The notes below the pieces were generated by a model. It was given only the letters and a program-made list of their open reading frames with translations, was not told the origin of the DNA and made no database searches. A DNA stretch of 64,000 bases, taken from the NCBI GenBank assembly GCA_002104905.1, contig MCFE01000323.1, positions 1 to 64,000 of the forward strand, written 5' to 3'. The translations under genes were made by a program, and so were the position numbers. Source of the stretch: Basidiobolus meristosporus CBS 931.73 (lineage: Eukaryota; Fungi; Basidiobolomycota). Positions 4,060 through 46,732 of this stretch are shown piece after piece (within the stretch, counting starts at the first letter, position 1; the number at the start of each line of letters is the position of its first letter).

Positions 4060-7000
4060 ATGACTTCTACTTTCAAGCGCTGGAAATGGCTGATACCACT
4101 ATTTCTATTAAAATGTATGACCTTTGTATATGGTGGAGAGGTGTCCATCACAAAAACTAGTTTTCACAATCTACCCACCAAGCTATTCTATTTCGAAGAT
4201 TCTGGGGTATGCCAACCTGTACTTTGCAAACGGAAGGGTGCGGATCTCTGACATTCTCTGTAGGTAATTCTTTACTTAGATACCATCCTGAAAACGGTCT
4301 ATTACTCTTCGGACGAGGGAAAATCATGGGCACCCGTGTCTGGAGTTCCTGAGCGAGTAGCCCTAGAGATGTATAATCACCCATTTGACAAGGACACGGT
4401 AATGCGCTACTGATATTGGGATATTGATATTCAATGGGATTAACTCGTCTTGCTACTTTGCAGGCATATATATTGACGAATTCTCAGACGCAGTACATCT
4501 CGCAAGACAAGGGGGCAAGTTGGAAATCATTCGAGACTCCGTTAACGCCTAGCACAAGCACCCCAGCACTGAGTTTTCATGCAGAACGAGCTCACTACGT
4601 GATATTCACGGGTGTCCGGTGTAATTCCTCCGGGGGCTGGGGCAGAGAGACATGTACGGATGAAGTAAGTTACTTGATTCGAGCGATGCGATTGTACCTG
4701 GTAGTAACTTCCATCATTGTTCCTAGTCTTATTACACAAGAGATGCGTTCAGTACTGCTCCCAAACTACTACTTCGGAACACAGCTAAATGCATTTGGGC
4801 ACGATCCACACCGCATTTTCAATCAGTGCCGGAACAAACAGTCTTGTGTATCGAAAGCGTGGTTGATGAAATAATGACGAATGCGAATAACATGAGACTG
4901 GTTCAAAGTGAGGATTACTTTGAGCATTCTAAAGTCGTAGTCCAGTTCAATGAGGAGGCTAGAGATATGAGCGGGATCGTTGGACTAACTGTGATCGAAA
5001 GATATTTAGTGGCCGCCCTGGTAAGGTTTACAGACCTCTGCTGCTCAATGAAACTGCTAATGAATGCATGGTCTGCCCCTCTAGAAGCACAAGAATAGTG
5101 ATGACATGAGCTTGTTCGTTACCCAAGATGCCATTGAGTGGGATATGGTAGAGTGTAGGCGAATAGGCAGTGATAGGTATTGCGAGTTGCTAAACGTTTC
5201 TTGCAATTCCTTAGGCAAACATTCCGTTGAACTCCGGCTTGAAGCAAAATGTACGATTATTAATTCTGCACTATTTTGAAATCTACATGTTACTAACTTG
5301 GTTTGGTTCTTTTGACCAGGCCTTTACCCTCTTGGAATCCTCATCACATTCATTGGTGCTCGACGTTGTATACTCAAACTCGGCAGCTTACGGAAATCTC
5401 TACCGATCCAATTTCAACGGCAGTTTTTACACGACCTCCCTCAAATACACTAACAGAAATGCCGCGGGGATTGTTGATTATGAGAAGATTCAGGGCGTTG
5501 AAGGCATCGTGCTATCGAATGTTGTATCGAATTACGAGATTGTCGATCGGAATGGTCCTTGGGTTGAGAAAAAACTGAAATCCATGATCTCATTTGATGA
5601 TGGTTGGTACATTCCATCGTCGTTGATGTAAGCCAGCCAAGCTAACATATGCTCTTAAGGTGCCCACTGGAGATATCTTAAGGCACCAGAAGCAGACCAT
5701 GAAGGGAGACGATACCAATGCCATTCCGGACAGAGTGTAAGACTACTCTTATCACCTGCATCTTAATATATATTAATCTGTTTCTACTTCCTGTGAAAAG
5801 TCGGATGAGTGCACATTGCATTTGCACTCTGTAACAAGGCCGCACAACTTTGGCAGAGTCTTCTCCTCCAGCGGAGCTCCAGGAATTGTTATGGGTGTTG
5901 GTAGTGTTGGCGATTCGCTTTTACCCTACGACCAATGCGATACTTTTCTCAGCGCTGACGGTGGCTTAACTTGGAAGGCAGTCAAAAGCGGCGCGCAAAA
6001 ATATGAATTTGGCGATATGGGGGCACTACTAGTCATTGTGAATGACGAATCTTCCACTGACCATTTTCACTACAGCTATGACAGAGGTCAAAGTTGGAAA
6101 AAAGTGGAATTGGGAGCCACGATACGAGCTCGGCTGTTGACCACTGACCCGGAGTCTACTACACAGAAGTTCCTGCTCCTCGGTACCACCAGCAACAACT
6201 GGGAAACGGACGGAGCGCGGCATATCATGTTCCAATTGAACTTCGAGAATGTCCTGGACAGGAAGTGCCAGTTTGAGGAAGGGAATACGAATGGTGATTT
6301 CGAGAAATGGATCGCCCGAAACCTAGAGGACGGCCCTGACTGCATTATGGGGCATACCACTTCCTACTGGAGACGTAAAGAAAATGCCAATTGCTATGTT
6401 GGCGAGAAGTTCAAAGATCCAAAACAAACACTGGATACCTGCCCATGCACCCAGGAAGATTTCGAATGTGACTATAATTTCGTTCAAGATGACAGTGGAA
6501 AATGCGTGAAGGCAGGCCCGGAGATTATTCCCGCTGGTGAATGTCAAGGAGGCAAAGAGAGGTATCTTGGAAGCTCAGGGTATAGGCTTATCCCAGGGAA
6601 CACATGCGACCGGGACAGGGGCCAGAAACTTGACGAGCCTATAGAGAAGCCGTGCAGCGCTGGAGAGCATCGAGACTCCAAGCCAACTGGAGTAGTAAAA
6701 CACAAATCCACCATCTTTTCTTCGCCGATTGATAGATTCTATTACTTCCAAAACTCCTCAGTTATACTGATCCATACTATGATGGGAGAGATCTGGAGAA
6801 GCTCGGATGAAGGGGCCACTTGGATCAAGGTCATGAAGGAGCAGGGCCCGATTGCTATATTGATCATGCACGAATGGAGCAATGAGCGGGCCTATTTCTT
6901 TACCGAAAACAACGAGTTGTGGGCCACCGTTGATAAAGGCGCAACGTTCTCCAAGATCTCGATCCCCCTGCCCGGAAATAAACTGGGCTTGCCGCTGCTG

Positions 7001-10000
7001 GACTTCCATCCCGATGAGTCGGAGTGGTTACTCTTCATGGGAGGCACTGATTGCCCAGGCTGTCACAGCGAAGCTTTCTTTAGCAACAACCATGGGGAAT
7101 ATTGGACCAAGGTTGAGACATTCGCACAAAAATGTATCTTTGGAAAGGATGCAAAGTTCACCAAAGTTCCGAAGGAAACGATCTTCTGCTCATCCTATAA
7201 GAACAAGGACGCCGGAATTAGCCAGGACGCGTTGGGTGGCATATCCACCAATGCCAATCCGCTGCAGCTGACAATGACCACCGATTTCGGGGACAACTCG
7301 CATATGGTTTTCCAGCCAGTGTCCGAGTTCATCATTACTGACGAGTTCATGGCAGTGGCAACAGAGCATGGCGGCGATCTGGTGCTCTATGTGTCTGTGG
7401 ACGGAGAGAGTTTTGCGGAAGCGGTGTTCCCCCCAAACACACGGGTCGACAAAAACGCATTCACCATTCTTCAGTCCAACACCGGCACCATCTTCCTGGA
7501 CATCTTCAGGTCAACCACATACGGGTCCGAATACGGCACCCTGTTTGTATCGAATTCCAACGGCACCTACTACTCTAGGTCTCTGGAGAACACCAATCGC
7601 AACAGCAATGGCTTGGTGGATTTCGAAAAGATGCTAGGGATCGAGGGGACCATACTGGCCAATCAAGTGATCAATGCCGAAACGTCCGGAAGGTACAATT
7701 CCAAGAAGAAAGTCCGTACCATGATCTCCTATGACGATGGCAGTACCTGGAAGCCAATCATTGCCCCGAGCGTAGATGCACTAGGCCGGCCAATCAACTG
7801 CGTGACCGACTGTTTCTTGAATCTGCATAGTCGAACCGATATCAAAGGACCAGGTGCCATATTCAGCGTAGACTCTGCTGCTGGCCTTATGATGGGAGTT
7901 GGGAATGTCGGGCCAAGCCTGCTGCCCTACGAACAAGGAAACACATATCTTACAAGGGACGGTGGACGTACCTGGAAAGAGATAAGGCGAGGCGAGAGCC
8001 TGTATGAGTTTGGTGACTATGGCGGATTGTTGGTTGCCATCGATGATGAGGGAGCTACAGACCAACTTCTATATAGCTGGGATTTGGGAGACCATTGGAA
8101 TACGTACACGTTCTCCGATGAGTCGATTCGCGTCTCGATGCTTACAATCGAGCCCACGTCGACCAGTCAGAAGTTCTTGATCATCGGCCATACTGTTTCC
8201 ACCAGGGACCGCAATGCTCAGCAGGTGGTGATCCAAGTGGACTTCAACAACATCGAAGCGCGCCAATGCAACTTCAACGAGAACGAGAACGACAATAACA
8301 ACGACTTTGAGCTATGGAACCCTGCCGGGCTATCAGAGTGTTTACTTGGCCATGAAACTGAATACTGGAGGCGCAAAAAGGATAGAGTCTGCTACATCGG
8401 TAAACCGTACGGAAAACCCAAAACCAAGCAGATCAACTGCAAGTGCACTGAAAGGGACTACCAGTGTGACACCAATTTCTGGAGAGACTCGAATGGCAAA
8501 TGTGTCCTCTATGGAACTGATCCGGATCGCCCACGTACCTGCCAATCTGGACAGAGGTACCTTGGTAGCTCCGGGTACCGGAAGATCCCCAAGAGCACAT
8601 GTGTAGGCGGGCTCCGGCTTGAAGAAAAAGTAGAGAAGGATTGTGGCACGATCACCGGCATACAAACCAAAGCGACCGTGTTTGAGCAAGAGGAAATCGT
8701 CGATTACTACTACTTCAAAAAATCTGACCATGTGCTGATGCGCACATCCACGGGTAGCGTGTGGGTGAGCTATGACGAAGGCTATGAATGGAAAAAACTT
8801 TTGGGGGATACAGGCGAGAAGGTGATCGACGTGTACATGCACCCGTACGACGAAGATAGAGCATACTTCATTACTCAAGGGAAGATCCACTACTACACGA
8901 AGGATGAAGGTAGAAAGTTGGAGCAGTTCAAGGTCCCGGTAGCTCCAAGCACCCTGGGCTCCAATTTGCTGAGTCTGCATCCCGAGGAGCCTGACTGGCT
9001 GATCTATGTGGGCAGCGAGGAGTGCGAATGGTCATTGTCGCCGAACTGCCACACAGACGCATATTATTCGTTGGATGCCGGAAATACGTGGAAAACGTTG
9101 GAGACGTATGTGAAGAGCTGCACCTGGGCCCGGACCGACAAATTCACTGCACCCAAGAAGAATTCGATCTTCTGCGAAAGCTACGCATCGAAACGCGGGA
9201 ACCAGAAGCAGTTTAGTGGGCAGCCTGTCGATTTCTTGCTGAGCACTGATTTCTTCCAAGATCAACGCCGCCTATTTGAAAACACCGGAGGCTTTGCTAT
9301 CTTTGAAGAGTTCATGGTGGTGACGCAGTTGGATAGCAGCGGGGGCGGGATGTTTCTTCAGATGAGTGTTGATGGGGAGAACTTCGCATTAGCACAATTC
9401 ACTGGCGATATCTCCAAGCTTCATCAGGCATATACAATCCTCGAGTCCACGACACATTCCGTATTCTTGCACGTCACCACGAACACGCGCACGAACGCCG
9501 AATTCGGCACCATCTATATCTCCAACGCCAATGGAACCTTCTTCACCACCTCAGTTGAGTCAGTCAACAGAGACGCTCGTGGGCTGGTTGACTTCGAAAA
9601 GATGGCTGGCATTGACGGAATTGCTATGGTGAACCAAGTCGCAAACCCCACTCAGACCAACCGGGGTGACAAGAAAAAATTGCGCTCGTTGATTTCGCAT
9701 GATAACGGACGATCATGGAAACCGTTAACGGCTCCGAAGGCGGACGTTTATGGAAGAGCGTATGCCTGTGCGGCAGAAGAATGCAGCCTTAACATCCATA
9801 GTTACACGGAGCATCAGGATCCGCAAAATCTGTTCAGCTCATCATCGGCTGTCGGGTTAATGCTAGCAGTTGGCAACGTGGGAGACCATCTAACGGATTA
9901 TGTCGAAGGAGATACTTTCCTGTCCAGAGATGCTGGTGTAACTTGGAAGGAGATCCGCAAGGAAGCCCACATATATGAATTTGGCGACCATGGAGCCATC

Positions 10001-10924
10001 CTGATTCTGGTCAACGATGAAGAGCCAACTGATCACATACTATATTCATTGGACGAGGGATTGCACTTTAAGGAGCACTATTTTGCCAAGCCAAGTGAGA
10101 AAATCCGGATTTACACTATTGCCACTGAGCCACAGTCAACTAGCCGAAAGTTCTTGCTCTTCGGACGCACTACCGGATACAAACCCAATCAAGTGGTAGT
10201 TCATGTTGACTTCTCCGGGCTGAATATTAACCAATGCTTACTCGACACGGGCAAACCCGACACAGATGATTTTGAGCTATGGAGTCCGCAACAAGAGATG
10301 GAATCCAAATGTTTGTTCGGCAGGGATGTGCAGTACTACAGGCGCATTCCCCAGAACATCTGCTACATTGGCGGCAAGTTCGAGAACCCGGCCAAGATCG
10401 TATCCAATTGCACCTGTACTGAGCACGACTTCGAATGCGATTACAACTTTGCTCGCAAAGGGAATGAATGCGTGCTGGTTCCGGGACTTGAGCCATTGAA
10501 GACCGGGTGCGATGGAAGTGCAGACTACTACTACATCTCCTCCGGGTATCGCAAAATCCCGATGTCCAGTTGCGTTAATGGATTGGATCTTGATCAACGG
10601 CAGCGATATTGGTGTCCAGGCAGAGAGTGGAAGCGCGCAGTTAAATACACAGCGATCATGGTTCCGATATTACTTGTTGGCTGTGCCGTCTATGTGTATC
10701 TACGCCGACGCGGTGTAGAGTTCCCTACATCCATTCGTGCCCCATCGTTCGCCAAACTACGATTCCTGGGAGGATTAACTCGGATCAGGGTTCCTAGGTG
10801 GAACTGGTCATGGCTACGAAGGGGCACCAGCTCTAACTATGGATACGGCTATACAAGAGTTAATCAGGATGAGCCAATGGATGTGCTCATGGAAGACTAT
10901 GATTCGGACGATATGGATATGTGA
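4060..10924 (+). CDS. VPS10: Vacuolar protein sorting receptor Vps10/Pep1 (sortilin family) with three tandem Vps10 domains; 2119 aa; exons join(4060..4206,4264..4398,4464..4664,4727..5020,5085..5147,5215..5250,5320..5602,5660..5736,5801..10924)
   Basis: Signal-peptide-like N-terminus (WLIPLFLLKCMTFVYG). Repeated Asp-box/BNR motifs (SxDxGxTW) and three Cys-rich 10CC modules. One TM helix (TAIMVPILLVGCAVYVYL) and a cytosolic tail with YTRV and an acidic cluster. Eight GT-AG introns restore one frame of 6360 nt. Confidence 0.95.
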
Positions 10925-12524: not shown

Positions 12525-13070
12525 CTCCCTTACGTTGAGACGTCTTTTCCTTATATCATCTGATCCATCTGTATCCACGTTGGTTGACCCATCATCGTAA
12601 TATTTTCAATAAATAAGCTTACATCCCAGCTAGAACTAAGATCGAACGAATTCGGTTGTGCAATTTCCTCGTCGGTATTCGTCAAACGCGTTTTGTTTAC
12701 GATGGTGACTTTACAAACTAATCGCCCATCAAACTCGAAATGATGTCACACACGCAAGGCCAACTATGAACGAGTAAGTATGTACGTGTTGGATCTTGTG
12801 ACTTGGCAACTTCGATTCCTTTATTCTGAACTATTTCACAATCGATTATCAAGGCTCGATATTTGTAACGGGTTAAATTGGCTGGGCGAAAGGTTGATAA
12901 AAAGGAAGTGGAGCGAAAGTTCCTCCGGCATGGAAGAAATTGGGTTACGTGAAGAGCAAATGGATTATATGTGATAGAGGGCTGGTAAAGGATTGGTGGC
13001 AGCAGTTGGTGCGGGACGATCGGATGTTTGAGACGCGTTCATCCACATTTCCCCGTGTCCACTAAGCCGT

Positions 13071-13238
13071 TTAGTTCTTAGCTTTGGCTTGGAAGTTGAT
13101 ATAAAGAACTTCCTCACCACGAGCTACCTTGCTGCCATACCAGGTTCCCCCGGCAACCCCTGCACCAACCATCCCGAGCCTTGGTCCATTCGTGGCTACC
13201 CGAGTGATTGCGCTGCGGAATACTCCTATGCCATACAT
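13071..13238 (-). CDS. Microprotein type B, 55 aa (MYGIGVFRSAITRVATNGPRLGMVGAGVAGGTWYGSKVARGEEVLYINFQAKAKN); NDUFA4/B12D-like (tentative)
   Basis: ATG..TAA, 168 nt, below the 60-aa cutoff of the ORF track. Gapless alignment to type A (25/54 identical) with many synonymous changes. Confidence 0.8.
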   Translation of the reverse strand: MYGIGVFRSAITRVATNGPRLGMVGAGVAGGTWYGSKVARGEEVLYINFQAKAKN

Positions 13239-13907
13239 CTTGCTATGGGTTATGTGCTATGTGCTTTTCTGGTGGGAACCTCGTTTCCTTGTCTGATGAA
13301 GTCTTCCAACGTTCCTGCTGGTATGAGCTTCCCTGATCGAGCCTTCAAGTCGATGAGTTATGAATGGATTGAGACAGGTAAAGTCAGCGCTAGGGCTGGT
13401 GCCTGGACTGATTGAAAGAGGTGAAGAAGCTAACAAGCAAGCTTGTTGACGCATCCTCGGTTCGCACTTCTCTCGCCTTTATACTGCCTGAACCCTCTCA
13501 GCAGGAACGCCCTTCAGATCATTCACCACTCCATCCATGAGCTGATTGGCTCAGCTACTCGGAGGGTAGTACGAGCCTTGTCTGGCAAGCGGTACCGAAC
13601 TCCACTCGGCTTCCTGTCCACCACATCATCCCCGCTGCATCTCCTCCTATCCACTCACCCACAGAGAGCCCACCGTTTGAGCACACCGTGATGGAGATTC
13701 AGCGAATATTCCTCCATGGCCGATGACAAGCAGCCATCAGGATTCATGTGGACGAGCATAGTATTCAGGCTTGTCCAGCCGGGCTACACCTGATTCCCCA
13801 AGATACGCTATCATGAGCTCAGATAGTCATAGTTCCTATCATGAGCTTATCGCGTAGCTGCATACAGAAATAAGCCTCCTTAATCTGCCATGTGCCTACC
13901 AATCTCC

Positions 13908-13911
13908 CTCG

Positions 13912-13942
<31 letters not shown>

Positions 13943-16750
13943 CCTCACTCTTGACCTTGTTCATTCCCATTTGCGGACATTGTATTTGCCATTATCATTA
14001 TCGTTGCCATTGCCACTGCATTATCCTCATGGTCACTCGCCTTCCTTTCGCCTGTCCGGCACACATTCCACTGACTCCATCATGACGAAGTATCCTGCTT
14101 ATCGTAAGAAGTGAGGCAGCATTTCGAGACTGATTGCATCATTCCGGCTGGTTTGCAAATTCATGCGCAACCTAGTACTTGCATACATTGTCCTCATCCT
14201 TCCGGATTTCACTCATCTTCATGTGTATACATACTCGCTCTTCCTCACTCTTCCTTACTCTTCCTCACTCTTCCTCGCTCTTCCACTTTCTTTCGGAATG
14301 GGTAGCCATCAGTGTGGGTACATGACATTGTGTATGTGCAACATGGAACAGCCATCAGAATCAGGGGTCAGTCCGCGAGGGATCACCATTCATTGGTGAG
14401 CATACTGGTCGGCCCAATCGGAGCAAACCAGGCGAAAAGAAATCTACCCAAAGCAGAGCAATGGGAAGGCAAGCAATAATGTGGTCAGGTGAAGGATCAC
14501 AAAAATGGCACGAAACACCGTTGCTATGAAGAAGTGGAGTGGGACAAGACGATCAGCAACGAGAATAGTGCTGATGGTGTGTGGTGCGGTGTGGTGTGGT
14601 GTGGCGTGGTGCAAAGCGATGGGATATTCTATTTCACTGAGCACCCTGACCAACAAGCTTGAGGGATATTGAGTGGACATTGAGTGGACGGATGATTGAT
14701 AGGTAACACCAACCAAATGACTTCCTTGCCACTGATCGCGTGGCTCCAGATCAAGATTTCCTTGAATCGCCCACCATTCACCTCCTGTCCCACCATCACC
14801 GCCAAACCAGCCCATATATAGATCCTTCATACAGCACCCAACCTCAACTCCCTGACGTCCATTCCGAAATCCTCCGAACCTTCACATGTCAATGTCATTT
14901 CAATGTCACCTTGGCGAAGCTGGCTCAATCACCTACGTGAAATAGATCTGTCAAGAATCAAGGCTTCTTCATTGGCCCGCCAATTTCTTTCACATAATCA
15001 TTCTCACTCAGTAATCAAGACCAGATTTTGCTTCACCTCAACCATCAGTTCTCAAACAAACCAGCGCCGACACGCTTACTCATCACTGATGGTAGAGTGA
15101 TTATCGCGAGTAGGGCCCTGAGGTTCCCACCCAAAAGGAAAAGATCTTTCATGGGAGTGATCTTGCCATTTCCCCTTCCCCTTCCCCTTCCCCTTCCCCT
15201 TTCCATTTCTTCCACACGAACCCTGAGATGGTTGTGTGGTGCGGTTGGTGTGAACATGTAGAGTGCACGAATAGCACATTTGTAATCACGCTCACCATAT
15301 TCACCCCGCTATCTCCCAAAATAGATATCTCCCAATCATCGTCTGTCGTTTACGATTCTGGTGGGTAAATTTGCCGCCATTGAGGCGAGTGCATGGATTT
15401 CTACTGTTGTCTGCGGCCCGTATATTACACAAGCTGGACCGGGATGTTATGAGTAAATATCCCCACTGCCGCTAGCACTATCATCCCCGATCGTCATATA
15501 TTGGAATGAATGTCAGTAAGGAGCTGCAAAACGATGCTTTTTGCAGGATCCCTCTTATTTCAAAGGGCATCTTCACTGTTACGATGATTGCTGCAATGGT
15601 CGTGACCACTATTACCATTATGGCAGCTGCCACTGTAGCCACATACTGTTATGGCCATGACCATGGTCACGGTCATAACTATTGATTTTTGTGCTGCTCG
15701 AAGAGAGAGGGAGAGTGGGACGGAGAGTGAGGGGAGGGGAGGGGAGGGGAGGGCAGGGGAGGAGGGGAGAGGAGAAGGGAGGAGGCATCTTGACTCATTC
15801 ATCCACATACTGGGTCATTCAGATCTAAGATTAGCACATACATGTGATATCACTATTCACTGCTGGTGATGGGAAATTGTCAGTAAGGCTGGTTGTTGAT
15901 CACGTGGGTGGTGAGTGGTGGGCGGTGGGTGGTGAGTGGAGCTATGGATCCTAGAAGAGTGATGGTGATCAGTGAACCCTGGGGCCAATATGGTTGGAAT
16001 GAGTGATCTGGATCATGACCAAATATGGCGGGTGTCTTGATTCCATCCCGTCCCTCATCAGAAGTGCAACCATGCCATACCACACCTCACCACATCATCC
16101 ACTACTCTACTCTGCCCTTCCGCCATTGCCACCACAATCCCTTCAGTTCCCGATTCACCCCTCACTCGTACCAGGTTGACCAGAATGGTTCGACGTATAG
16201 TGGCCACTTTGATCTCTTTTGAACACGATCCATCATGTCTATACCACATACTGAGCCCCGCTCAAAACCACCAATCTATTCATTCTAGTCAGTGACCGCT
16301 TCCTTCACAATCCCTTATATCTCTTCTCTTCATGTCTTCTCCTTACCACCTTCACCTTGAGCTAGCCCCGCGTATGACTACTTCCTTCGCACCATTGTAG
16401 TCGATGTTGCTGTGACTTCGAATGCGTATTGATGCACCTCGTACTAAGGCCAGAGGAAAAGCCACTTGCTTGACACAATAAAACCGCCAAACCATCACGC
16501 ACTCACACATTCGCTCAGACACCGACGCGCGCGTATTCCCATCCATATTATCACCAAGCTTTCCACTGTCTTTGGTACTACCAATGCTCTTTTATTGTTC
16601 ATTTGCAAACATCCTTGCCATGAACTGACATCGGGATCTACGTTTCGGCGCATTAGTGTTGGTGTAAGGTGGTAGGAGGCATGAGGCATGAGGCTCGAGT
16701 ATGGGCGTATGTTCAGGTAAAGGCAAAGGCAAAGGCAATGGCAATGGGAT
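13908..16750. repeat. Cluster of short tandem repeats in the left arm: (CTCACT)n ~13915-13950, (GTGGT)n ~14577-14610, (CCCCTT)n ~15170-15200, GGGGA/GGAGA tract ~15730-15783, (GGCAAA/GGCAAT)n ~16718-16748
   Basis: Read directly. They produce the low-complexity spurious ORFs (PLPLPL, GKGKGK, LTLTLT). Confidence 0.9.
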
Positions 16751-16946
16751 GGCTGATAAGGGGCTGGGGCGCTTGGCCATAGTTTCGTGTATGTACAGGC
16801 ACCGCCATACCCATCGCCCCACTTCTCAACAACCAGCCAGGAAATATGATCATTCGGTTCAGTCTATCTCAATAGGGAGGAGGGGAATCTAGTCTAGTTC
16901 AGTGTCACATGTCGCGAGGGGGAGAGGCTGTGGCAGGGCTGCACTC

Positions 16947-17111
16947 TCAGGCGGTTTGCTTTTTGAAGTTGATGTAGAGGACCTCTTGGCCGCGAATGAC
17001 CTTGTTTCCATACCAGCCAACCCCTAGAATCCCGACACCGAAGGCGGCTAGCTTTGGAGCTTCGGAGACGAAACGAAGGGTGGTGGAGCGAAGAATACTG
17101 GTGGAAGGCAT
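16947..17111 (-). CDS. Microprotein type A, 54 aa (MPSTSILRSTTLRFVSEAPKLAAFGVGILGVGWYGNKVIRGQEVLYINFKKQTA); NDUFA4/B12D-like (tentative)
   Basis: ATG..TGA, 165 nt; TATAAAT about 54 bp upstream; Gly-rich hydrophobic segment; paralogous to the other three micro-ORFs. Confidence 0.8.
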   Translation of the reverse strand: MPSTSILRSTTLRFVSEAPKLAAFGVGILGVGWYGNKVIRGQEVLYINFKKQTA

Positions 17112-17164
17112 CGGGAAGCTTCTTAAACGAGGTGGATGATTTTTGGGACAGGCGGCACTTCGAA

Positions 17165-17171
17165 ATTTATA
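17165..17171 (-). promoter_or_regulatory. Putative TATA box (TATAAAT) for the left type-A micro-ORF
   Basis: About 54 bp upstream of the ATG at 17111; positionally symmetric with the TATA at 18253. Confidence 0.45.
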
Positions 17172-18252
17172 CCATCAAGGAAGGTGATCAAGGTGCGGCA
17201 ACCTGCTTACCAATTGGGTGGGTGTGCTAGAGAACGATGTGCTCAAGATTTGGTTATGGAAGAGATTTGGTAAGCCTGCTCATTGATACTTCAAACGATC
17301 CGTAGGAAACGGTACCTGCCACTATCACATGCTTCATGACCCACTGTGACCAATATCCATTGCAGGATGAGGTTGGTTGGACCTTCATTCCGAATATCTC
17401 CGGGGAGGCGTGGATTTCGAGAAGTCCCCGAAATTCGAGATAATCAGGGAATTGGGTTTAATCAATTTCTATGATCATTAAAGAGCAGGTGCAACGAAAG
17501 AAAAGGCATCGCAACACTCAACCAGTTGATTAGAGGTGTTGGAGCAAGTCACCACATGGTTTCCAGAGCAGCCAAATTTCTCATAGTCATGTTACCAATG
17601 TAACTTCAAACGGTGCGGTAATGATCTATGTATGAACTATCTATCATATCAGCCAACCACATGCACATTCGAGTACGATCCATTATGCCAAGTGACATGA
17701 AATCCCCCAGTAGGTATTGGTTATGGAGAAACACCTGATACTGCTATCTAACGGCGCTACTCGAGCACATGTGTCATTATGATGATTGCACTAATAAAGG
17801 CTGGTCATAACTTACGGTAACGTACAGTGGGAGATTTCCAAGCAACGCCGTGACAGTCATGATTAATCAGGTTATCCTGCAATCGAGCATGTCAACGGTT
17901 TGTCATATTCCATACGGTCTTCAATGCAGAAAACTTATCTAGAATGGGCTAAAACGGATTCACCATCCGTCAAGGGTTCAGTATTCCGCTAAATTGAATT
18001 TCAATACAGATGTCAAATTCCCCTCGGGCAGAATCGGAGGGTGGTGGGGTTCTTTCCGGCACCTCAAATGGGATTTTGATTAAGGTGCAACAGGGATTGA
18101 CTCATTTAAGCTCATTCCAAAGATAGTTCGAGGAAATGAAATTTGTTTATTTCGACCCATACCTTCCTATTTTGGCAGTGTTCAGATCACGGTTCATTGG
18201 CTATCAAGAACTTGTAATTGACGTATCATTGAAATTAATGCCATATCGAATG

Positions 18253-18259
18253 TATAAAA
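18253..18259 (+). promoter_or_regulatory. Putative TATA box (TATAAAA) for the right type-A' micro-ORF
   Basis: About 57 bp upstream of the ATG at 18316. Confidence 0.45.
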
Positions 18260-18315
18260 AGACTTGCCAACGATGTCAAGCAGCCATCAATATTCCGTCT
18301 CATTTCAATATCGAC

Positions 18316-18480
18316 ATGTTTGCTATTCCAGTCGTTCGTTCCACAGCCCTTCGTATTGTCTCCGAAGCTCCAAAGCTAGCCGCCTTCGGTGTCGGGATTC
18401 TAGGGGTTGGCTGGTATGGAAACAAGGTCATTCGCGGCCAAGAGGTCCTCTACATCAACTTCAAAAAGCAAACCGCCTGA
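18316..18480 (+). CDS. Microprotein type A', 54 aa (MFAIPVVRSTALRIVSEAPKLAAFGVGILGVGWYGNKVIRGQEVLYINFKKQTA); NDUFA4/B12D-like (tentative)
   Basis: ATG at 18316 inside track ORF 18136..18480. Same length as the left-arm A copy; TATAAAA about 57 bp upstream. Confidence 0.8.
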   Translation: MFAIPVVRSTALRIVSEAPKLAAFGVGILGVGWYGNKVIRGQEVLYINFKKQTA

Positions 18481-20120
18481 GAGTGCAGCCCTGCCACAGC
18501 CTCTCCCCCTCGCGACATGTGACACTGAACTAGACTAGATTCCCCTCCTCCCTATTGAGATAGACTGAACCGAATGATCATATTTCCTGGCTGGTTGTTG
18601 AGAAGTGGGGCGATGGGTATGGCGGTGCCTGTACATACACGAAACTATGGCCAAGCGCCCCAGCCCCTTATCAGCCATCCCATTGCCATTGCCTTTGCCT
18701 TTGCCTTTACCTGAACATACGCCCATACTCGAGCCTCATGCCTCATGCCTCCTACCACCTTACACCAACACTAATGCGCCGAAACGTAGATCCCGATGTC
18801 AGTTCATGGCAAGGATGTTTGCAAATGAACAATAAAAGAGCATTGGTAGTACCAAAGACAGTGGAAAGCTTGGTGATAATATGGATGGGAATGCGCGCGC
18901 GTCGGTGTCTGAGCGCATGTGTGAGTGCGTGATAGTTTGGCTGTTTTATTGTGTCAAGCAAGTGGCTTTTCCTCTGGCCTTGGTACGAGGTGCATCAATA
19001 CGCATTCGAAGTCACAGCAACATCGACTACAATGGTGCGAAGGAAGTAGTCATACGCGGGGCTAGCTCAAGGTGAAGGTGGTGAGGAGAAGACGTGAAGA
19101 GAAGAGATACAAGGGATTGTGAAGGAAGCGGTCACTGACTAGAATGAATAGATTGGTGGTTTTGAGCGGGGCTCAGTATGTGGTATAGACATGATGGATC
19201 GTGTTCAAAAGAGATCAAAGTGGCCACTATACGTCGGACCATTCTGGTCAACCTGGTACGAGCGAGGGGTGAATCGGGAACTGAAGGGATTGTGGTGGCA
19301 ATGGCGGAAGGGCAGAGTAGAGTAGTGGATGATGTGGTGAGGTGTGGTATGGCATGGTTGTACTTCTGATGAGGGACGGGATGCAATCAAGACACCCGCC
19401 ATATTTGGTCATGATCCAGATCACTCATTCCAACCATATTGGCCCCAGGGTTCACTGATCACCATCACTCTTCTAGGATCCATAGCTCCACTCACCACCC
19501 ACCACCCACCACTCACCACCCACGTGATCAACAACCAGCCTTACTGACAATTTCCCATCACCAGCAGTGAATAGTGATATCACATGTATGTGCTAATCTT
19601 AGATCTGAATGACCCAGTATGTGGATGAATGAGTCAAGATGCCTCCTCCCTTCTCCTCTCCCCTCCCCTCCCCTCACTCTCCGTCCCACTCTCCCTCTCT
19701 CTTCGAGCAGCACAAAAATCAATAGTTATGACTGTGACCGTGGTCATTTAGGGTTAGGGTCAGAGTGGCGATATGATGCTCGTTGGAATGAGACCGAAAA
19801 GATGTCCCCAATGGGCGAATCAAAAGGCTCTTCCCATTTTTGACAGATCAATTTCGCATAGGTGATTCAAACCAAATCACCCTCATTATTCTTTTGTAAC
19901 GCGATGGTGAAGATGACATTGACATGTGAAGGTTCGGAGGATTTCGGAATGGACGTCAGGGAGTTGAGGTTGGGTGCTGTATGAAGGATCTATATATGGG
20001 CTGGTTTGGCGGTGATGGTGGGACAGGAGGTGAATGGTGGGCGATTCAAGGAAATCTTGATCTGGAGCCACGCGATCAGTGGCAAGGAAGTCATTTGGTT
20101 GGTGTTACCTATCAATCATC

Positions 20121-20180
20121 CGTCCACTCAATGTCCACTCAATGTCCACTCAATGTCCACTCAATATCCACTCAATATCC
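20121..20180. repeat. 11-bp tandem repeat (ACTCAATRTCC) x5 in the right arm; only 2 copies in the left arm (~14663-14690)
   Basis: Read directly on both arms. Confidence 0.85.
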
Positions 20181-21589
20181 CTCAAGCTTGTTGGTCAGGG
20201 TGCTCAGTGAAATAGAATATCTCATCGCTTTGCACCACGCCACACCACACCACACCACACCGCACCACACACCATCAGCACTATTCTCGTTGCTGATCGT
20301 CTTGTCCCACTCCACTTCTTCATAGCAACGGTGTTTCGTGCCATTTTTGTGATCCTTCACCTGACCACATTATTGCTTGCCTTCCCATTGCTTTGCTTTG
20401 GGTAGATTTCTTTTCGCCTGGTTTGCTCCGATTGGGCCGACCAGTATGCTCACCAATGAATGGTGATCCCTCGCGGACTGACCCCTGATTCTGATGGCTG
20501 TTCCATGTTGCACATACACAATGTCATGTACCCACACTGATGGCTACCCATTCCGAAAGAAAGTGGAAGAGCGAGGAAGAGTGAGGAAGAGCGAGTATGT
20601 ATACACATGAAGATGAGTGAAATCCGGAAGGATGAGGACAATGCATGCAAGTACTAGGTTGCGCATGAATTTGCAAACCAGCCGGAATGATGCAATCAGT
20701 CTCGAAATGCTGCCTCACTTCTTACGATAAGCAGGATACTTCGTCATGATGGAGTCAGTGGAATGTGTGCCGGACAGGCGAAAGGAAGGCGAGTGACCAT
20801 GAGGATAATGCAGTGGCAATGGCAACGATAATGATAATGGCAAATACAATGTCCGCAAATGGGAATGAACAAGGTCAAGAGTGAGGGTGAGAGGGAGAGA
20901 GTGAGAGCGAGAGCGAGGGAGATTGGTAGGCACATGGCAGATTAAGGAGGCTTATTTCTGTATGCAGCTACGCGATAAGCTCATGATAGGAACTATGACT
21001 ATCTGAGCTCATGATAGCGTATCTTGGGGAATCAGGTGTAGCCCGGCTGGACAAGCCTGAATACTATGCTCGTCCACATGAATCCTGATGGCTGCTTGTC
21101 ATCGGCCATGGAGGAATAATCGCTGAATCTCCATCACGGTGTGCTCAAACGGTGGGCTCTCTGTGGGTGAGTGGATAGGAGGAGATGCAGCGGGGATGAT
21201 GTGGTGGACAGGAAGCCGAGTGGAGTTCGGTACCGCTTGCCAGACAAGGCTCGTACTACCCTCCGAGTAGCTGAGCCAATCAGCTCATGGATGGAGTGGT
21301 GAATGATCTGAAGGGCGTTCCTGCTGAGAGGGTTCAGGCAGTATAAAGGCGAGAGAAGCGCGAACCGAGGATGCATCAGCAAGTTTACTTGTTAGCTTCT
21401 TCACCTCTTTCAATCAGTCCAGGCACCAGCCCTAGCGCTGACTTTACCTTCGGTCTCAATCCATTCATAACTCATCGACTTGAAGGCTCGATCAGCGAAG
21501 CTCATACCAGCAGGAGCGTTGGAAGACTTCATCAGACAAGGAAACGAGGTTCCCACCAGAAAAGCACATAGCACATAACCCATAGCAAG

Positions 21590-21757
21590 ATGTATGGCAT
21601 AGGAGTATTCCGCAGCGCAATCACTCGGGTAGCCACGAATGGACCAAGGCTCGGGATGGTTGGTGCAGGGGTTGCCGGGGGAACCTGGTATGGCAGCAAG
21701 GTAGCTCGTGGTGAGGAAGTTCTTTATATCAACTTCCAAGCCAAAGCTAAGAGCTAG
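21590..21757 (+). CDS. Microprotein type B', 55 aa (MYGIGVFRSAITRVATNGPRLGMVGAGVAGGTWYGSKVARGEEVLYINFQAKAKS); NDUFA4/B12D-like (tentative)
   Basis: ATG..TAG, 168 nt. Identical to the left B copy except the last codon (AGC vs AAC) and the stop (TAG vs TAA). Confidence 0.8.
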   Translation: MYGIGVFRSAITRVATNGPRLGMVGAGVAGGTWYGSKVARGEEVLYINFQAKAKS

Positions 21758-22259
21758 GTGGCTCATTGGAAAAATTGAGAACTAAGCTCCTCCCGTATGC
21801 TAGATAGCTTTACCATTCCAAACCGTGTCAATTGCTCTACAGATACGTTTATCTTCGGGCAGAAATATATCCTCTACTGCCAAGGAAATTCGGTTTCAAA
21901 TCATCACATCCTTATCTACATGCATATCCATATCCGTATTCTATACCCCACAAACTTAGCACGCAGCCTGTCATGTCGGGCATTTTTCATAAAGATCTAC
22001 GAAAACCGAACGCACTTTATTTTCACCATGTATTCCAAGTGGCGCTTCCCACATCTTTTGAGACGCGCCAAACCTCTCGCCAATCATCATTTCCACTCAT
22101 CTCCAATTCTGTATCCCATGTGGAGCAACGGACCATCGATTCCCTTCTCCATGCCCTGACAATTGACAGTTGTGGGTATAACATGCTTGCAAGCCGTTTG
22201 AACCTGGTACTCAAGTCATTTCGTGGTGTCATGTAGAGTTTCCCTTGAAGCTACATCCG

Positions 22260-33424: not shown

Positions 33425-34309
33425 TTACTCTTCATAATGCTCCAGACACATTTCTCTCAGTGGATTTCTTCTTGTCTGAACATACTGTGCATTGATAAGT
33501 ATCTTAACTATTTTACCTATTCTGCTGTTTTCTCCTATATATGACTTTCCTCTGTATTTACCTGCCAATATGCTGAATCTCTTCAGATATCCAAATGTGT
33601 GCTCTACCCTTACTCTGAAATGATTAAATATCTCATTGTAGAGCTTCTGCTTCCTGCCAAGCACACCATTCCTTGGCTTCCTATAAGCTGTAATACATCC
33701 TAATCTCTGACAATCCTCTCCTATATAGGCCAAGTCTGCCATACATTTCTCCCCTCTACTGAATTCAGGATGATTCTCTACCCAGAGTGCTTTGTCATGC
33801 CTACTTCCAGCAAATGGCCCACTAAACCAGATGATGTTACCCTCAATGTCAGACAGTGCTTGAAACTTCACACAGTGTGCCTTGTACTTGCCAGAATAAA
33901 AGTGCCTCTGCCCTCTAGAAGGTCTGTTAATCCTCACTGGGAAGGTATCCAAAATACTCCTGATATGGAACCTGTTGCTGAACACTCTGGGATATGGAAG
34001 TCTATTGGAGCTTCTGAACCTAGTATTCCAAGCTTGCTCTAAGTCATTCATACCCTCTGCAAGGTGGTTCTCCATTGCTGTCAGCTGGGAATGAAAGCTT
34101 CTAGGACTTTTGTTGCCATGGATGGTGGGATGAAACCTTGTAGGGCAATAGTTCTTGTAATAGCAGAGAAGCTTAACAAGGGATCTCCTTGAGTAGATTG
34201 GGGTTGATGGTCCACAGTACTTGGAATAGATCTCCTCCAGTGTGTCAAAAGGAAATCCAGTGGTAATGATGGGATTGATGAGAAAAGACCATTCAGATGA
34301 GTAAGTCAT
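33425..34309 (-). CDS. DDE transposase (DDE_Tnp_4 / IS5-PIF-Harbinger type), 294 aa, intact
   Basis: ILDTFPVRINRP, FYSGKYKAHCVKFQ, GSRHD, MADLAY and RVRVEHTFGYLKRF motifs; ATG..TAA with no interruption. Confidence 0.93.
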   Translation of the reverse strand: MTYSSEWSFLINPIITTGFPFDTLEEIYSKYCGPSTPIYSRRSLVKLLCYYKNYCPTRFHPTIHGNKSPRSFHSQLTAMENHLAEGMNDLEQAWNTRFRSSNRLPYPRVFSNRFHIRSILDTFPVRINRPSRGQRHFYSGKYKAHCVKFQALSDIEGNIIWFSGPFAGSRHDKALWVENHPEFSRGEKCMADLAYIGEDCQRLGCITAYRKPRNGVLGRKQKLYNEIFNHFRVRVEHTFGYLKRFSILAGKYRGKSYIGENSRIGKIVKILINAQYVQTRRNPLREMCLEHYEE

Positions 34310-41878: not shown

Positions 41879-44800
41879 CTAATCTTGATGTGCGAAATTC
41901 CTATGCTTGAATAACTTAAGTCGATTTCCAGCAACTGGTGCTCTCAACTGGGTGTTGTCAAGCTCAGATATGTAATAACTTCCATTTCCAATCACTTTGG
42001 AAATGAGGTAGGGGCCAGTCCATTTGTTGTCAAACTTCCGACTCCATTGCTTGTCCAAGGTAGAATCGTAGAGTAATACTGGGTCTCCTAGTGATAGTGG
42101 TTTTGGCCTTGTTGGGTGTGATTTGTCAAAGGGCACCTTGTTCTTTAGTCGTGTATCCTTAAGTTGTTCAGCAGCTCTGCTGATATTCAAGTCATGGTGA
42201 TCAAGTTGCTGTATGCGAGTTGCAAGGAGGTCTTCAGTCTGCATATTGGATCTCCAATTCAATGAGTTCCAAGTGACTGTGTTTAACTCAACTGGTAGTA
42301 TGCAGTCATGTCCATAGAGTAGCTTGAATGGCGATGATCCAGTTGTCCTCTTAGTAGTAATTCTATCTGCCCACAGTGCAAGATGTAATTGCTGTGGCCA
42401 CAGTGTTGTGTTATTCTCACAGGCCTTGACAAGAGAGTTCACCAATGGTCCATGTCCTCTCTCTATCATTCCATTGGCTTGAGGGTGGTAAGCTGTTGTG
42501 AAAGCTATGTGTATCTTGTACTTTGAGCACAACTCCTGGATCATTTGGGATGTCATCTCTCCTCTGTCAGCAACAAACTGTTGGATGCAGCCAAATCTGC
42601 AGATGATGTCTTCAAGTATAAATCTCCATATGGTATGGCTCTTGTTGTTGGGCAAGGCTCGAGCCTCTGCCCATCCACTAAGGTCATCTCTAGCAACAAT
42701 CAGGTACTTTTTTGATCCAGCTGTTGGCATGTGGACAAGGTCAATACCAACCTTTTGCCATAGACAGATTGTGTAAGTAGGATGCAGTGGTTCTTCATAA
42801 CGCTTGGAGGATCTCTTCTGGCAGGCTACACATGACTCAACAAAGTGCTGGACATCATAGTACATGTTTTCCCAGTAGTACCTCTGAGCTGTGGTATTGT
42901 ATGTGGCTTCTCGTCCTCTATGTCCTCCTGGTTCTCCTTGGTGGATACTTGTCATGATGTTCAGTTGCTCTTGAGGGGTGGTGACTACTCTTCTTGGCAT
43001 AAGTCCAGGCTTCACTCGCTTAAAGAGAAGATCATCTTTAAGATAGTAGTGGTGTGCCTTCTTCCTGAGTTTTCTAAACTCCTGAATATCCATCCAACTA
43101 GGTTTCTTAAGTGTCCTTAGATATTCCTTGATCAGACTCCAGGTAGTTCTCTCTTGGTCTTTGATGGCAATCTGTCGGATCTCTGCATCGATAATATCGT
43201 CAAAGTGAGGGTCCAAGTCTTCAAATAATTGTGGTCCCTTCCTGGAGAGTGCATCAGCCACAACATTTGTCTTGCCAGGGATATGTTTGACCTCAAAGTC
43301 AAACATTTTCAGCCATGCCATCCATCGGTTTGTGGCATCATCAGGTAGGTCAGGCTTGTTGATCATTCCTATAAGTGGCTTGGCATCTGTCTCCAGGATA
43401 AAATGTGTCATGTAGAGTTGTGACTTCAGTTTCCTCAGCATCTTCACAACTCCTAGTAGTTCTCTCTTAATCTGTGAGTATCTTTGTTCTCTAGGAGAGA
43501 ATAGGCAGCTCTCATATCTGCAGGCATAGCGGTTGCCATCTTCATCATCTTGTCCAAGTAGTGCTCCAGCTCCTATGGGGCTTGCATCCACTGTCAAAAT
43601 AGGTGGGCATTCAGTGTTTTGATAGTCAAGAGGTCTTAGAACTGGTGGAGATACTAAGGCCTCTTTCAGTAATTGCATGGCTTCTTCTTGCTCTTCTCCC
43701 CAGATAAATGGGGTATTCTTTCTCTGTAGTCGGTAGATTGGTTCTGCTATCTCAGAAAATCTTGGGATCCAGATCCTAAAGAACCCACAAGCTGCCACAA
43801 AGCCACGAGCTTGTGTTAGATTTGTGGGGGTAGGCCAGTTGCATATCTTTTGTGTCTTGGAGTCTCCAGGTGAGCGACCAAAGGTGTTGCATTTTTGTCC
43901 AACAATGGATATCTCTGATACACCAAAGCTGCTTTTCTCACCACTGATGGTGAGTCCAGCTTCTTCAATGGCTCCTAGTATGGCATCATTGTCTGCAATA
44001 TGGTCATAGACAAACTTTCTTACTCCAGGCATAACTTCAGTGGTGTCCCGGAATTTTGATCCTTTGATGCCTATGTCATCCACAAAGACAGCAAGTTTCT
44101 CAGGTATAAACTGGTATAGCACATTCACCATGCATCTCTGGAACTGAGCCACGGAGTTTGTAGCCCCTTGGCTGAGTCTTGTCATCCTTAATAGTCCAAA
44201 TGGTGTCTGTAGTGCAAACATATCTCTTGATGTCTCATCAAGGGGAATCTGGTCATATCCTGAGTAGAGATCGTATGTTGAGTAGATGGAGTGGCCACTA
44301 AAGCTTTCTGCAAAGTCATCAATAGATGGAGGTATAGCAGCATCTCTGATAGTGACAGCATTTGCAGGTTGCATGTCTTGAATGAATCGGAGCTTTCCAT
44401 TCTTCTTTTTGGTTACAAACCATCTGTTAGCATAGGGCCCATGGCAAGGTTCTAGGATACCAGCTTCTATCTTCTTCTTAAGTAGGTCATGCACATCAGC
44501 TTGGAGTCCTCTGGGCAGTGGGTAAGGCTTAAATGACCAGGGTGTGTGGGGCACTGTATGAATCTTGATGGGTTTTTCAACCGATGTCTTTAAGAGTCCC
44601 ATCTCCTTGTCATTATATGAGAAGACCTTATCATGCCTTTTCAAGGTCTCCTTAAATAATAGTATCTCCTCTGGTGTAAGGTTTCCATCACCAATGATAA
44701 GTTGCTTAAGTCTCTCAGGTGTAAGTCGTGTATCATCTGGTGTTTCTTCTGGTGGTCTAATGTAATCAGCAGGTCGGGATCCATCAGTCAAAGGTGTAAG

Positions 44801-46732
44801 TGATGGTCTAATCTTCTGTTCTACTGTCTTGTATTTTGTTCGAACCATAGCTGTTTGCTCCTGTATACCTAATGAGCAGCTCCAAATGTTGGGGTGTATA
44901 TTGTCAGGCTCTTCATCTTCTTCCATAACAAGATGTGTCTTCTGGCAAGCAGTATGTGTCCTCTTATTGTTGGGTGTTACACCACAGAAGGTTGACTGTA
45001 GTCCTGGATTGGATCCTTGTATGGTGTACCATACTGACCCATCGGAATAGTTGGTAGTTGTAGCCTTAGTACTGGTTTCCCATGGTCTACCTAGCAGAAG
45101 GTCAAAGTTTGCCTTCTGGCAGATGAAGAGGGGAAGCCAGACCTTGATTCCTTGTACCTCAATAGGGAACTTGTGCACTACACCGTAGAGTGGACTAGAT
45201 CCTGAGTTTGCATCAGTCATGTTCCATCCAATATCTCTATCAACAGGCAGTAGCTCCTTGCTTCTAAGTGTCTTCCAGAAGTCTAGCGGCATAACACAAA
45301 TCTCTGAGCCACTGTCAATATGGCAGTCAACAGGGTCATCATATATATATCCTTTCACCACAGCAGTTGCAACTGAGTAAAAGGTCTTATACTCAGTAGT
45401 GTTGTCATCTTTTTGGTGGTCTTCATGGTTTGTGTGAATAATATGGGTGTCCATATGTTCAACAGCTTGTCGTCTTGTTCTAAGCTGCTCATCAAAGGTC
45501 TTCCTAACAGATGGGGATACACTCATGATTTCTCCAACCGACAAAGTGAGGTTCTGCTTCAGCAGCTTCTCAGTAATCAGTTGAGGGCTTGAGTAGCTTG
45601 TTATCTTTGAGGTCATCTGAAAGTGAGGCAATGGATCTTGGGTGGGCAGCATACTAGGCCTCTTGTCAATAACAACTTCAGGTTCTTCAAATCGTGGTCT
45701 TCTAAGGATGGGTTTGGCAGGTTCTTCAGGGAGGTGTCTTTTGGTAGCAAAGGCATCAACTTCATATTGTCTGTTGTCAGAGCTGCTTGGACTCACTTTA
45801 TGGGTCCCAATAGGGGCATCAACAGTAATCTTTCTGGTTGCTGAGTCAGATTTCTGGAAAAGGGCTCTCATCCCTCCTCTTCGGAAATTAGTGGGAATCC
45901 TCCTTCCTTCCTTGTCAGCAAGCATTCCATCAGCATCAAACTGTACTGCTCCTTCTCTGAGTAGCTGACTAAGCTCTGAGCATTCTCGTCTGGCATGCTG
46001 AGTAGAGTCACACCAGATGCAGTGCCTGGGCAAAGGTCTTTGTCCCTCAGTAGGAACCTCAGCTGAGCCATTAATCTTGAGGGCTAGCTTTTGTAACTGT
46101 TCAGCAAGTTGGTCAATTCTGTCGGTAGTGTAGGTCTGATTGTCAGCAGCAGCACTCCTTGGCTCCTTGGTTGACTGGTCTGGCAGATTAGATGTCAGGA
46201 GTCTCATAAAGGTAGAAGTTTGCTTTGCCTCTAGGAGAACACGTTTCATCTCTGCAAAGCAAGGAATGCCAGACTTGTCATCCTTGGCAGCATGTAAGTC
46301 AACTTTCCTTGCCAAGTCCTGGGGAAGCCCTTGTGCAAGGTAAAGTGTCATGGTAAACTCAGTTATAGCCTGGGACTCTAGGAGTGGCTTGGCCATATCT
46401 TCATACTGTTGAATGAACTCTTCAAGTGGTAGCTTGGAAAGTCCAGTTCTTCCAAAGTGCCTGAGATCTTCAATTCCATAGTATATCTGGGGTCTACCAT
46501 ACTCGGTCTGTAGGTAGGTCTTCATTAAGGCCCAGTCAGTGAGAATGTCTCCTTGTCTGAGAAGCTTAGTGGTAATATCATCGGTGCAGTAGTAGGGGAA
46601 GTCTTCAGCCATTTCTTGTTCAGATAGACTGCACATCTTGCAGAGCTTCTCCCATTTGAATATGAAGCTTTCCACATTCTTTCCATCAAACTGTGGGGCT
46701 CCATGTGAGAGTGGTAATGGCATAGAGTTCAT
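41879..46732 (-). CDS. Gag-Pol polyprotein, single ORF, 1617 aa (Gag-CCHC, PR, RT, RNase H, IN)
   Basis: CIWCDSTQHARREC knuckle; IDSGS protease; YDLYSGYDQ..FVDD RT; VDAS..ETDAKPL RNase H; HHCC plus DLVH..ADRGE..MIERGH integrase; GPY. Order PR-RT-RH-IN; no chromodomain seen. Confidence 0.97.
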   Translation of the reverse strand: MNSMPLPLSHGAPQFDGKNVESFIFKWEKLCKMCSLSEQEMAEDFPYYCTDDITTKLLRQGDILTDWALMKTYLQTEYGRPQIYYGIEDLRHFGRTGLSKLPLEEFIQQYEDMAKPLLESQAITEFTMTLYLAQGLPQDLARKVDLHAAKDDKSGIPCFAEMKRVLLEAKQTSTFMRLLTSNLPDQSTKEPRSAAADNQTYTTDRIDQLAEQLQKLALKINGSAEVPTEGQRPLPRHCIWCDSTQHARRECSELSQLLREGAVQFDADGMLADKEGRRIPTNFRRGGMRALFQKSDSATRKITVDAPIGTHKVSPSSSDNRQYEVDAFATKRHLPEEPAKPILRRPRFEEPEVVIDKRPSMLPTQDPLPHFQMTSKITSYSSPQLITEKLLKQNLTLSVGEIMSVSPSVRKTFDEQLRTRRQAVEHMDTHIIHTNHEDHQKDDNTTEYKTFYSVATAVVKGYIYDDPVDCHIDSGSEICVMPLDFWKTLRSKELLPVDRDIGWNMTDANSGSSPLYGVVHKFPIEVQGIKVWLPLFICQKANFDLLLGRPWETSTKATTTNYSDGSVWYTIQGSNPGLQSTFCGVTPNNKRTHTACQKTHLVMEEDEEPDNIHPNIWSCSLGIQEQTAMVRTKYKTVEQKIRPSLTPLTDGSRPADYIRPPEETPDDTRLTPERLKQLIIGDGNLTPEEILLFKETLKRHDKVFSYNDKEMGLLKTSVEKPIKIHTVPHTPWSFKPYPLPRGLQADVHDLLKKKIEAGILEPCHGPYANRWFVTKKKNGKLRFIQDMQPANAVTIRDAAIPPSIDDFAESFSGHSIYSTYDLYSGYDQIPLDETSRDMFALQTPFGLLRMTRLSQGATNSVAQFQRCMVNVLYQFIPEKLAVFVDDIGIKGSKFRDTTEVMPGVRKFVYDHIADNDAILGAIEEAGLTISGEKSSFGVSEISIVGQKCNTFGRSPGDSKTQKICNWPTPTNLTQARGFVAACGFFRIWIPRFSEIAEPIYRLQRKNTPFIWGEEQEEAMQLLKEALVSPPVLRPLDYQNTECPPILTVDASPIGAGALLGQDDEDGNRYACRYESCLFSPREQRYSQIKRELLGVVKMLRKLKSQLYMTHFILETDAKPLIGMINKPDLPDDATNRWMAWLKMFDFEVKHIPGKTNVVADALSRKGPQLFEDLDPHFDDIIDAEIRQIAIKDQERTTWSLIKEYLRTLKKPSWMDIQEFRKLRKKAHHYYLKDDLLFKRVKPGLMPRRVVTTPQEQLNIMTSIHQGEPGGHRGREATYNTTAQRYYWENMYYDVQHFVESCVACQKRSSKRYEEPLHPTYTICLWQKVGIDLVHMPTAGSKKYLIVARDDLSGWAEARALPNNKSHTIWRFILEDIICRFGCIQQFVADRGEMTSQMIQELCSKYKIHIAFTTAYHPQANGMIERGHGPLVNSLVKACENNTTLWPQQLHLALWADRITTKRTTGSSPFKLLYGHDCILPVELNTVTWNSLNWRSNMQTEDLLATRIQQLDHHDLNISRAAEQLKDTRLKNKVPFDKSHPTRPKPLSLGDPVLLYDSTLDKQWSRKFDNKWTGPYLISKVIGNGSYYISELDNTQLRAPVAGNRLKLFKHRNFAHQD

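Follow-up and report, generated by a model that had tools for sequence, protein, structure and literature searches.

A divergence mosaic in a small gene-bearing palindrome of Basidiobolus meristosporus, probably the result of arm-to-arm gene conversion in an older inverted duplication

We describe a palindrome in the fungus Basidiobolus meristosporus CBS 931.73, found in the first 64,000 nucleotides of contig MCFE01000323.1 (positions 1 to 64,000 of the forward strand, referred to here as the window). Its two inverted arms are about 4 kb each and contain a pair of paralogous genes apiece, A and B on the left and A' and B' on the right, that encode microproteins of 54–55 amino acids. When the arms are compared with each other, the divergence is a mosaic: a core that differs by only 0.8%, edges that differ by 13%, and an interior island that is 73–80% identical. 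We believe, with a probability of roughly 60%, that this mosaic comes from an older inverted duplication whose arms have been homogenised by gene conversion from arm to arm. All of the tests of conversion compare the two arms of this one locus and use the 64-kb window alone.

Anatomy of the palindrome

The locus drew attention through a prediction made from the sequence without database searches, which had called an inverted repeat here. A repeat search (find_repeats), blastn and a global MAFFT alignment all agree with that call and place the left arm at 13058–17092 against the right arm at 21770–18335. The similarity is concentrated in two high-identity blocks, 13072–14902 against 21756–19908 and 15657–17092 against 19747–18335. 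The main parts are as follows, with the strand given for genes.

13058..17092, left arm; high-identity blocks 13072–14902 and 15657–17069, from repeat search, blastn and global alignment
13071..13238, minus strand, gene B; 55 amino acids, paralog of A (43% amino acid identity), stop codon TAA
16947..17111, minus strand, gene A; 54 amino acids, head MPSTSIL, identical to A' from codon 15
17093..18334, spacer; unique, 1242 nt, 43% GC against 50% in the arms, without internal inverted homology
18316..18480, plus strand, gene A'; 54 amino acids, head MFAIPVV
18335..21770, right arm; high-identity blocks 18358–19747 and 19908–21756, from repeat search, blastn and global alignment
21590..21757, plus strand, gene B'; 55 amino acids, the same as B except for a final S in place of N and a TAG stop

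The genes of both arms point outward, so that the order is B and then A on the left, both read leftward, and A' and then B' on the right, both read rightward. Codons 1–7 of A and A' lie within the spacer, together with the 5' regions of both genes. We detected no inverted homology between the two halves of the spacer (z=1.2), and in the outer flanks the inverted homology does not continue beyond the arm ends (z=-0.7). There are no further copies of the arms within the 64-kb window, and tblastn with the family found no fifth microprotein copy in it.

Inverted symmetry of this kind can be produced by an assembly, either as a fold-back chimera or as two haplotypes joined in inverted orientation. 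At this locus 28 substitutions, at least 7 indels and a heterology of 754 nt on one side and 160 nt on the other set the two arms apart, and the heads of A and A' differ while both remain intact. The unique 1.2-kb spacer and the unique flanks lie well within the window, and the flanks are unlike each other, where alleles would have common ones. The dissimilarity of the arms and the uniqueness of both spacer and flanks rule out a fold-back read artefact and head-to-head alleles, and we regard an assembly artefact of any such kind as very unlikely. The palindrome is confirmed as genuine and gene-bearing.

We also considered a foldback-type transposon whose terminal inverted repeats would be 4 kb long and whose cargo would be the microprotein genes. 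In its favour, the arms are long, inverted and rich in microsatellites, and the region downstream is rich in transposons. However, there is no target-site duplication or other direct repeat at 13057/21771, the arms are mostly unique sequence rather than arrays of subrepeats, and the window holds neither a transposase for such an element nor another copy of it. The arm ends coincide instead with the coding ends of host genes, and the relatives of these genes form a plain tandem pair in Basidiobolus ranarum. Taken together, we give this explanation almost no credence.

Divergence between the arms

The divergence is far from even when the edges and the interior are included. Four stretches stand out from the core.

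13058..13075, pairing with 21770–21753, diverged outer edge; spans the B stop codon and runs slightly beyond it, with 6 of 18 nt mismatched
13438..13466, substitution cluster; 5 substitutions in 29 nt within an otherwise 99% identical core, P=0.002
14899..14978, pairing with 19911–19813, interior island of old-looking homology; 72.5% identity with 19 gap columns and 3 indels, best 52 nt about 80%
17070..17092, pairing with 18357–18335, diverged inner edge; 18 of 23 positions match, codons 8–14 of A and A'

Core. Over 3197 comparable sites the core arms have 28 substitutions (0.88%), and in the global alignment nearly all of the indels fall in microsatellites or short tandem units. The longest run free of substitutions, 535 nt at 16535–17069, ends at codon 15 of A. 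The original prediction had noted that A and A' are identical in nucleotide sequence from codon 15 on, and the absence of any difference in this run bears it out. The cluster at 13438–13466 lies away from the junctions, and it may be either an unconverted relic or an ectopic tract.

Edges. When the positions next to all of the homology boundaries are pooled, 13 of 100 sites within 25 nt of a boundary carry a substitution, compared with 25 of 3134 core sites (Fisher P=3e-11). This is 13% against 0.8%, a 16-fold higher density of substitutions near the boundaries. At the inner edge, the 5 mismatches in 23 nt are far too many for the core rate (P=1.5e-6), and the similarity is likewise far too high for random sequence (P=4e-7). 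The outer edge behaves in the same way: positions 13058–13071 have 5 mismatches in 14 nt (P of about 1e-7 at the core rate), and the 9 matches of 14 exceed chance (P=0.004). It had been claimed that the outer identity stops at the last codon and stop of B and B' with only a faint trace after it. We agree on both points, since the last sense codon (N against S) and the stop (TAA against TAG) differ and about 10 of 15 positions match past the stop. The homology ends approximately 14 nt past the B stop, after which B and B' have unrelated 3' flanks.

Interior. Between the two high-identity blocks, the left arm has 754 nt (14903–15656) and the right arm has 160 nt (19748–19907). An inverted match of 28 in 32 positions had been reported in this part, and we were able to extend it to some 52 nt, of which about 80% match (local score z=13.7). 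This best part belongs to the interior island, which adjoins 230 identical bases. What remains is 678 nt on the left and 65 nt on the right, and these are not homologous.

14979..15656, left-arm-specific segment; 678 nt, with an unrelated 65 nt (19748–19812) in its place in the right arm

The left-specific segment has no transposon ends, and no other copy of it is present in the window.

The arms also differ from their surroundings in composition, with 50% GC in the arms, 43% in the spacer and 40–47% in the flanks and interior. When 16164–16534 is compared with 19263–18893, the left arm is A/T and the right arm G/C at 8 of the 10 substituted sites, a mild trend that is not significant and is unpolarised.

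How the mosaic may have formed

Selection cannot explain the identity of the arms, because about 3.7 kb of each arm is without an ORF that Pfam recognises and is nevertheless 99% identical. The ORFs between the genes and those in the flanks match no Pfam family.

We suggest the following course of events. An inverted duplicate of a roughly 4-kb segment with the tandem microprotein pair would have arisen some 1.2 kb upstream of A', which would make the left arm the copy. The segment would have begun near codon 8 of A' and ended roughly 14 nt beyond the B' stop. A, truncated in this way, would then have acquired a new start and 7 new codons from the DNA that flanked it. After that, non-allelic conversion would have repeatedly overwritten one arm by the other, which would keep some 3.2 kb, apparently non-coding for the most part, at 99.1% identity. 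Homology ends and the borders of a heterology should rarely be converted because conversion tracts need homology on both sides. The last 15–25 nt at the homology ends and the DNA beside the 754/160-nt heterology may thus have escaped, and would retain an older divergence of about 20–30%.

The main competitor is a recent inverted duplication, about 1% diverged, made in one complex replication-based event such as template switching or break-induced replication, with no conversion later. Error-prone synthesis would have mutated the junctions, and a template switch would have swapped the interior segment. Several observations weigh on this side and against conversion. A clean run of 535 nt is not unusual given 28 substitutions (P=0.17), and the spacing of the core substitutions shows no over-dispersion (CV^2, P=0.35) and fits a uniform rate of 0.9%, so the evenly spread core, taken alone, looks like a simple young duplicate and does not demand conversion. 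Three of the four diverged islands adjoin structural junctions, at both arm ends and beside the interior heterology, and a single complex, error-prone duplication would also place changes there. The homology stops at both ends. The seven codons of A look newly recruited next to the ancestral head of A', as if 17092 were a true breakpoint, and the inner end of the arm is then more likely the original duplication junction than the end of a conversion tract in an old full-length copy. The GC excess of the arms is compatible with GC-biased conversion, but it may merely reflect sequence content.

What speaks against a single recent event is the amount and the placement of the divergence. A mismatch of 20–30% over 15–80 nt is, as a matter of general knowledge, far above what is reported for replication-based breakpoints. 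The 29-nt cluster with its 5 substitutions lies away from any junction, and the three indels of the interior island look like accumulated divergence. For these reasons we consider a recent duplication without conversion somewhat unlikely, and we favour conversion between the arms of an older duplication as the probable source of the mosaic.

The prediction had gone further and proposed an old inverted duplication kept nearly identical in patches by conversion. Our results support this picture in part. The divergence mosaic agrees with it. Patchiness within the core does not reach significance, as only the 29-nt cluster is unusual there, and the inner end does not look like that of an old full-length copy of A.

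Origin of the A head

The first 14 codons of A and A' had been described as homologous but heavily diverged. We find this to be true of codons 8–14, which make up the diverged inner edge, and not detectably so of codons 1–7, where only 6 of the 18 positions beyond the ATG match. The head of A' is MFAIPVV. A second B. meristosporus gene, K493DRAFT_320860, begins with MFATQAI, and a B. ranarum gene also begins with MFA (the MFA type is seen in P0010 and P0002). This shared MFA start marks the head of A' as the ancestral type and the MPSTSIL of A as the derived one.

The ends of the conversion tracts had been placed inside and at the end of the genes. The outer end does fall at the B/B' stop, while the inner end, inside A, is more probably the original junction. 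If the inner end is the original junction, then it is a matter of coincidence or of selection that A and A' both have heads of 7 codons. Another way to arrive at these limits may be an old duplication that was once longer, with flanks that eroded up to the constrained coding sequence.

Presumably both gene copies are expressed. One could go on to suppose that the limit of conversion at codon 15 marks the point where a presequence-like, cleavable head gives way to the mature part, so that conversion and selection would keep one mature product under two targeting or regulatory inputs, with unrelated heads and promoters, in a family restricted to Basidiobolus. We find this doubtful.

The microprotein family

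Among the four genes, only A' is a called protein (P0001, in a large protein collection). A and B share 14 of 17 residues in the C-terminal motif WYGxKVxRGxEVLYINF, and 9 of those 14 codons differ synonymously. Because the motif residues are kept while the synonymous sites are saturated, A and B are real coding sequences and old paralogs. This fits the earlier suggestion that the A–B pair is older than the inverted duplication, as does their amino acid identity of 43%.

Relatives were found only in Basidiobolus, namely in B. ranarum and in B. meristosporus CBS 931.73 itself. An exhaustive profile search of 1.84 billion representatives gave two true relatives, K7432_006035 and K7432_006034 of B. 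ranarum, both of 51 amino acids. The remaining six matches are long repeat proteins that share a Gly-rich or strand-turn-strand motif only. The two B. ranarum genes have consecutive locus tags on one 19.3-kb contig, and this adjacent pair supports an old tandem arrangement. A word search with the alignment added K493DRAFT_320860, 54 amino acids, on another contig (41 kb) of B. meristosporus CBS 931.73, while the same kind of search with A alone returned only the window's own A'. Since K493DRAFT_320860 is nearer to K7432_006035 (78% identity) than to A/A' (59%), the palindrome is the more diverged paralogous locus. A tree of the seven proteins is too weak to settle whether B is the ortholog of K7432_006034.

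Other searches gave little. A metagenome scan with the family alignment had no matches, none of the seven members matched Pfam at E<=10, and the best score in the ESM Atlas, 0.81 to a bacterial PEP-CTERM-like protein, is below the level that counts. AlphaFold with the seven-sequence alignment predicts one long helix at a pLDDT of 60. Profile searches against all chains of the PDB found only a strand-turn-strand motif of 17–19 residues in LSm6 and a cupin (E=0.07–0.2), and a PDB search with a single sequence did not identify the protein either.

Three candidate identities were tried and rejected. NDUFA4/COXFA4 has neither a Pfam match nor a match to a complex I or IV subunit in the PDB, where the LSm6/cupin motif was the only thing found. 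UQCR11/QCR10, a small subunit of complex III, likewise has no Pfam or PDB match. For an Sm/LSm fold there is only a Sm2-like stretch of 19 amino acids (E=0.07 with 4 sequences and 0.2 with 7), compared with the Sm1 and Sm2 motifs over about 70 amino acids that the fold has; the Sm1 motif is absent, and the same stretch matches a strand pair of a cupin.

The N-terminus of the family is basic, without acidic residues and with an invariant R13, and thus resembles a presequence. Next comes a Gly/Ala-rich segment of only moderate hydrophobicity (Kyte-Doolittle hydropathy of 0.9–1.6 over 15 residues), and then the conserved C-terminal motif. The claim that A and A' have different N-termini and the same transmembrane and C-terminal part stands for the identity from codon 15, while a transmembrane helix in the Gly/Ala-rich segment is no more than possible.

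A metagenomic repeat protein of 274 amino acids, P0007, contains HVVWYGN..EQEIFYS several times and matches the microprotein profile at E=8.5e-7. Given this protein, the conserved C-terminal motif may not indicate kinship and may instead be a strand-turn-strand unit of a generic kind.

The longest ORFs in the arms, 14444–14830 on the minus strand (128 amino acids) and 19981–20325 on the plus strand (114 amino acids), belong to no family. Both have a very weak tblastn likeness (E of about 1–4) to the C-terminal motif of the microproteins, which may be chance or may point to a decayed third family member between A and B.

Surroundings of the palindrome

Outside of a few genes, the ORFs of the window are short, and scans of the window for tRNAs and Rfam families gave no matches. 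Directly upstream of the palindrome is a housekeeping gene for a Vps10/sortilin receptor (5816–10924, plus strand), an uninterrupted ORF of 1702 amino acids with two units of Sortilin-Vps10 and Sortilin_C. Downstream there is a cluster of transposons, with a Harbinger/PIF-type DDE_Tnp_4 transposase at 33425–34309 (minus strand), an intact Ty3/gypsy pol ORF of 1617 amino acids at 41879–46732 (minus strand) and a copia-type gag at 50441–51196 (plus strand). Near the start of the window, at 394–2827 on the minus strand, an ORF with MLKL_N, which is like a four-helix executioner domain (2207–2827), directly precedes an ORF whose kinase-domain tail is weak (394–1353). Together these could be a fungal MLKL-like pseudokinase gene.

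Significance and comparison with known systems

In a text search of the literature, neither gene conversion nor palindromes in Basidiobolus turned up as the subject of a paper. Arm-to-arm conversion is itself a textbook process, this is an ordinary kind of feature, and nothing changes in what is known about the process. What the locus offers is a small, clean gene palindrome in which the edge effect of conversion tracts would be visible nucleotide by nucleotide. Four microprotein genes of a family seen only in Basidiobolus, unannotated or mis-called until now, come to light as well, one of them with a recruited N-terminus. Its value is in annotation and possibly in a genome-wide survey of palindromes in Basidiobolus, and we see the microprotein family and the chimeric head of A as the best by-product.

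The formation of inverted duplications by fold-back priming or template switching has been described (PMC10622511, PMC10766186). Our palindrome is similar to those in that an inverted copy lies near the original, the unique spacer is short and the breakpoints are unrelated to the limits of genes. By analogy, fold-back priming or template switching could be its origin. These accounts of how such duplications form leave the roughly 20-fold contrast in divergence between edges and core unexplained.

For primate palindromes, see also PMC6790999. The present locus shares with those of the primate Y and X chromosomes the inverted arms, the unique spacer, the genes in the arms and the sharp boundaries, as well as arms that are about 99% identical including their non-coding DNA and that are richer in GC than their surroundings. 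In primates, these gene-bearing palindromes are maintained by gene conversion from arm to arm. Ours differs in being a thousand-fold smaller, with 4-kb arms, in being fungal and without a link to a sex chromosome, and in being known here from one genome. It also differs in that one inner arm end cuts a gene, which has created a chimeric head.

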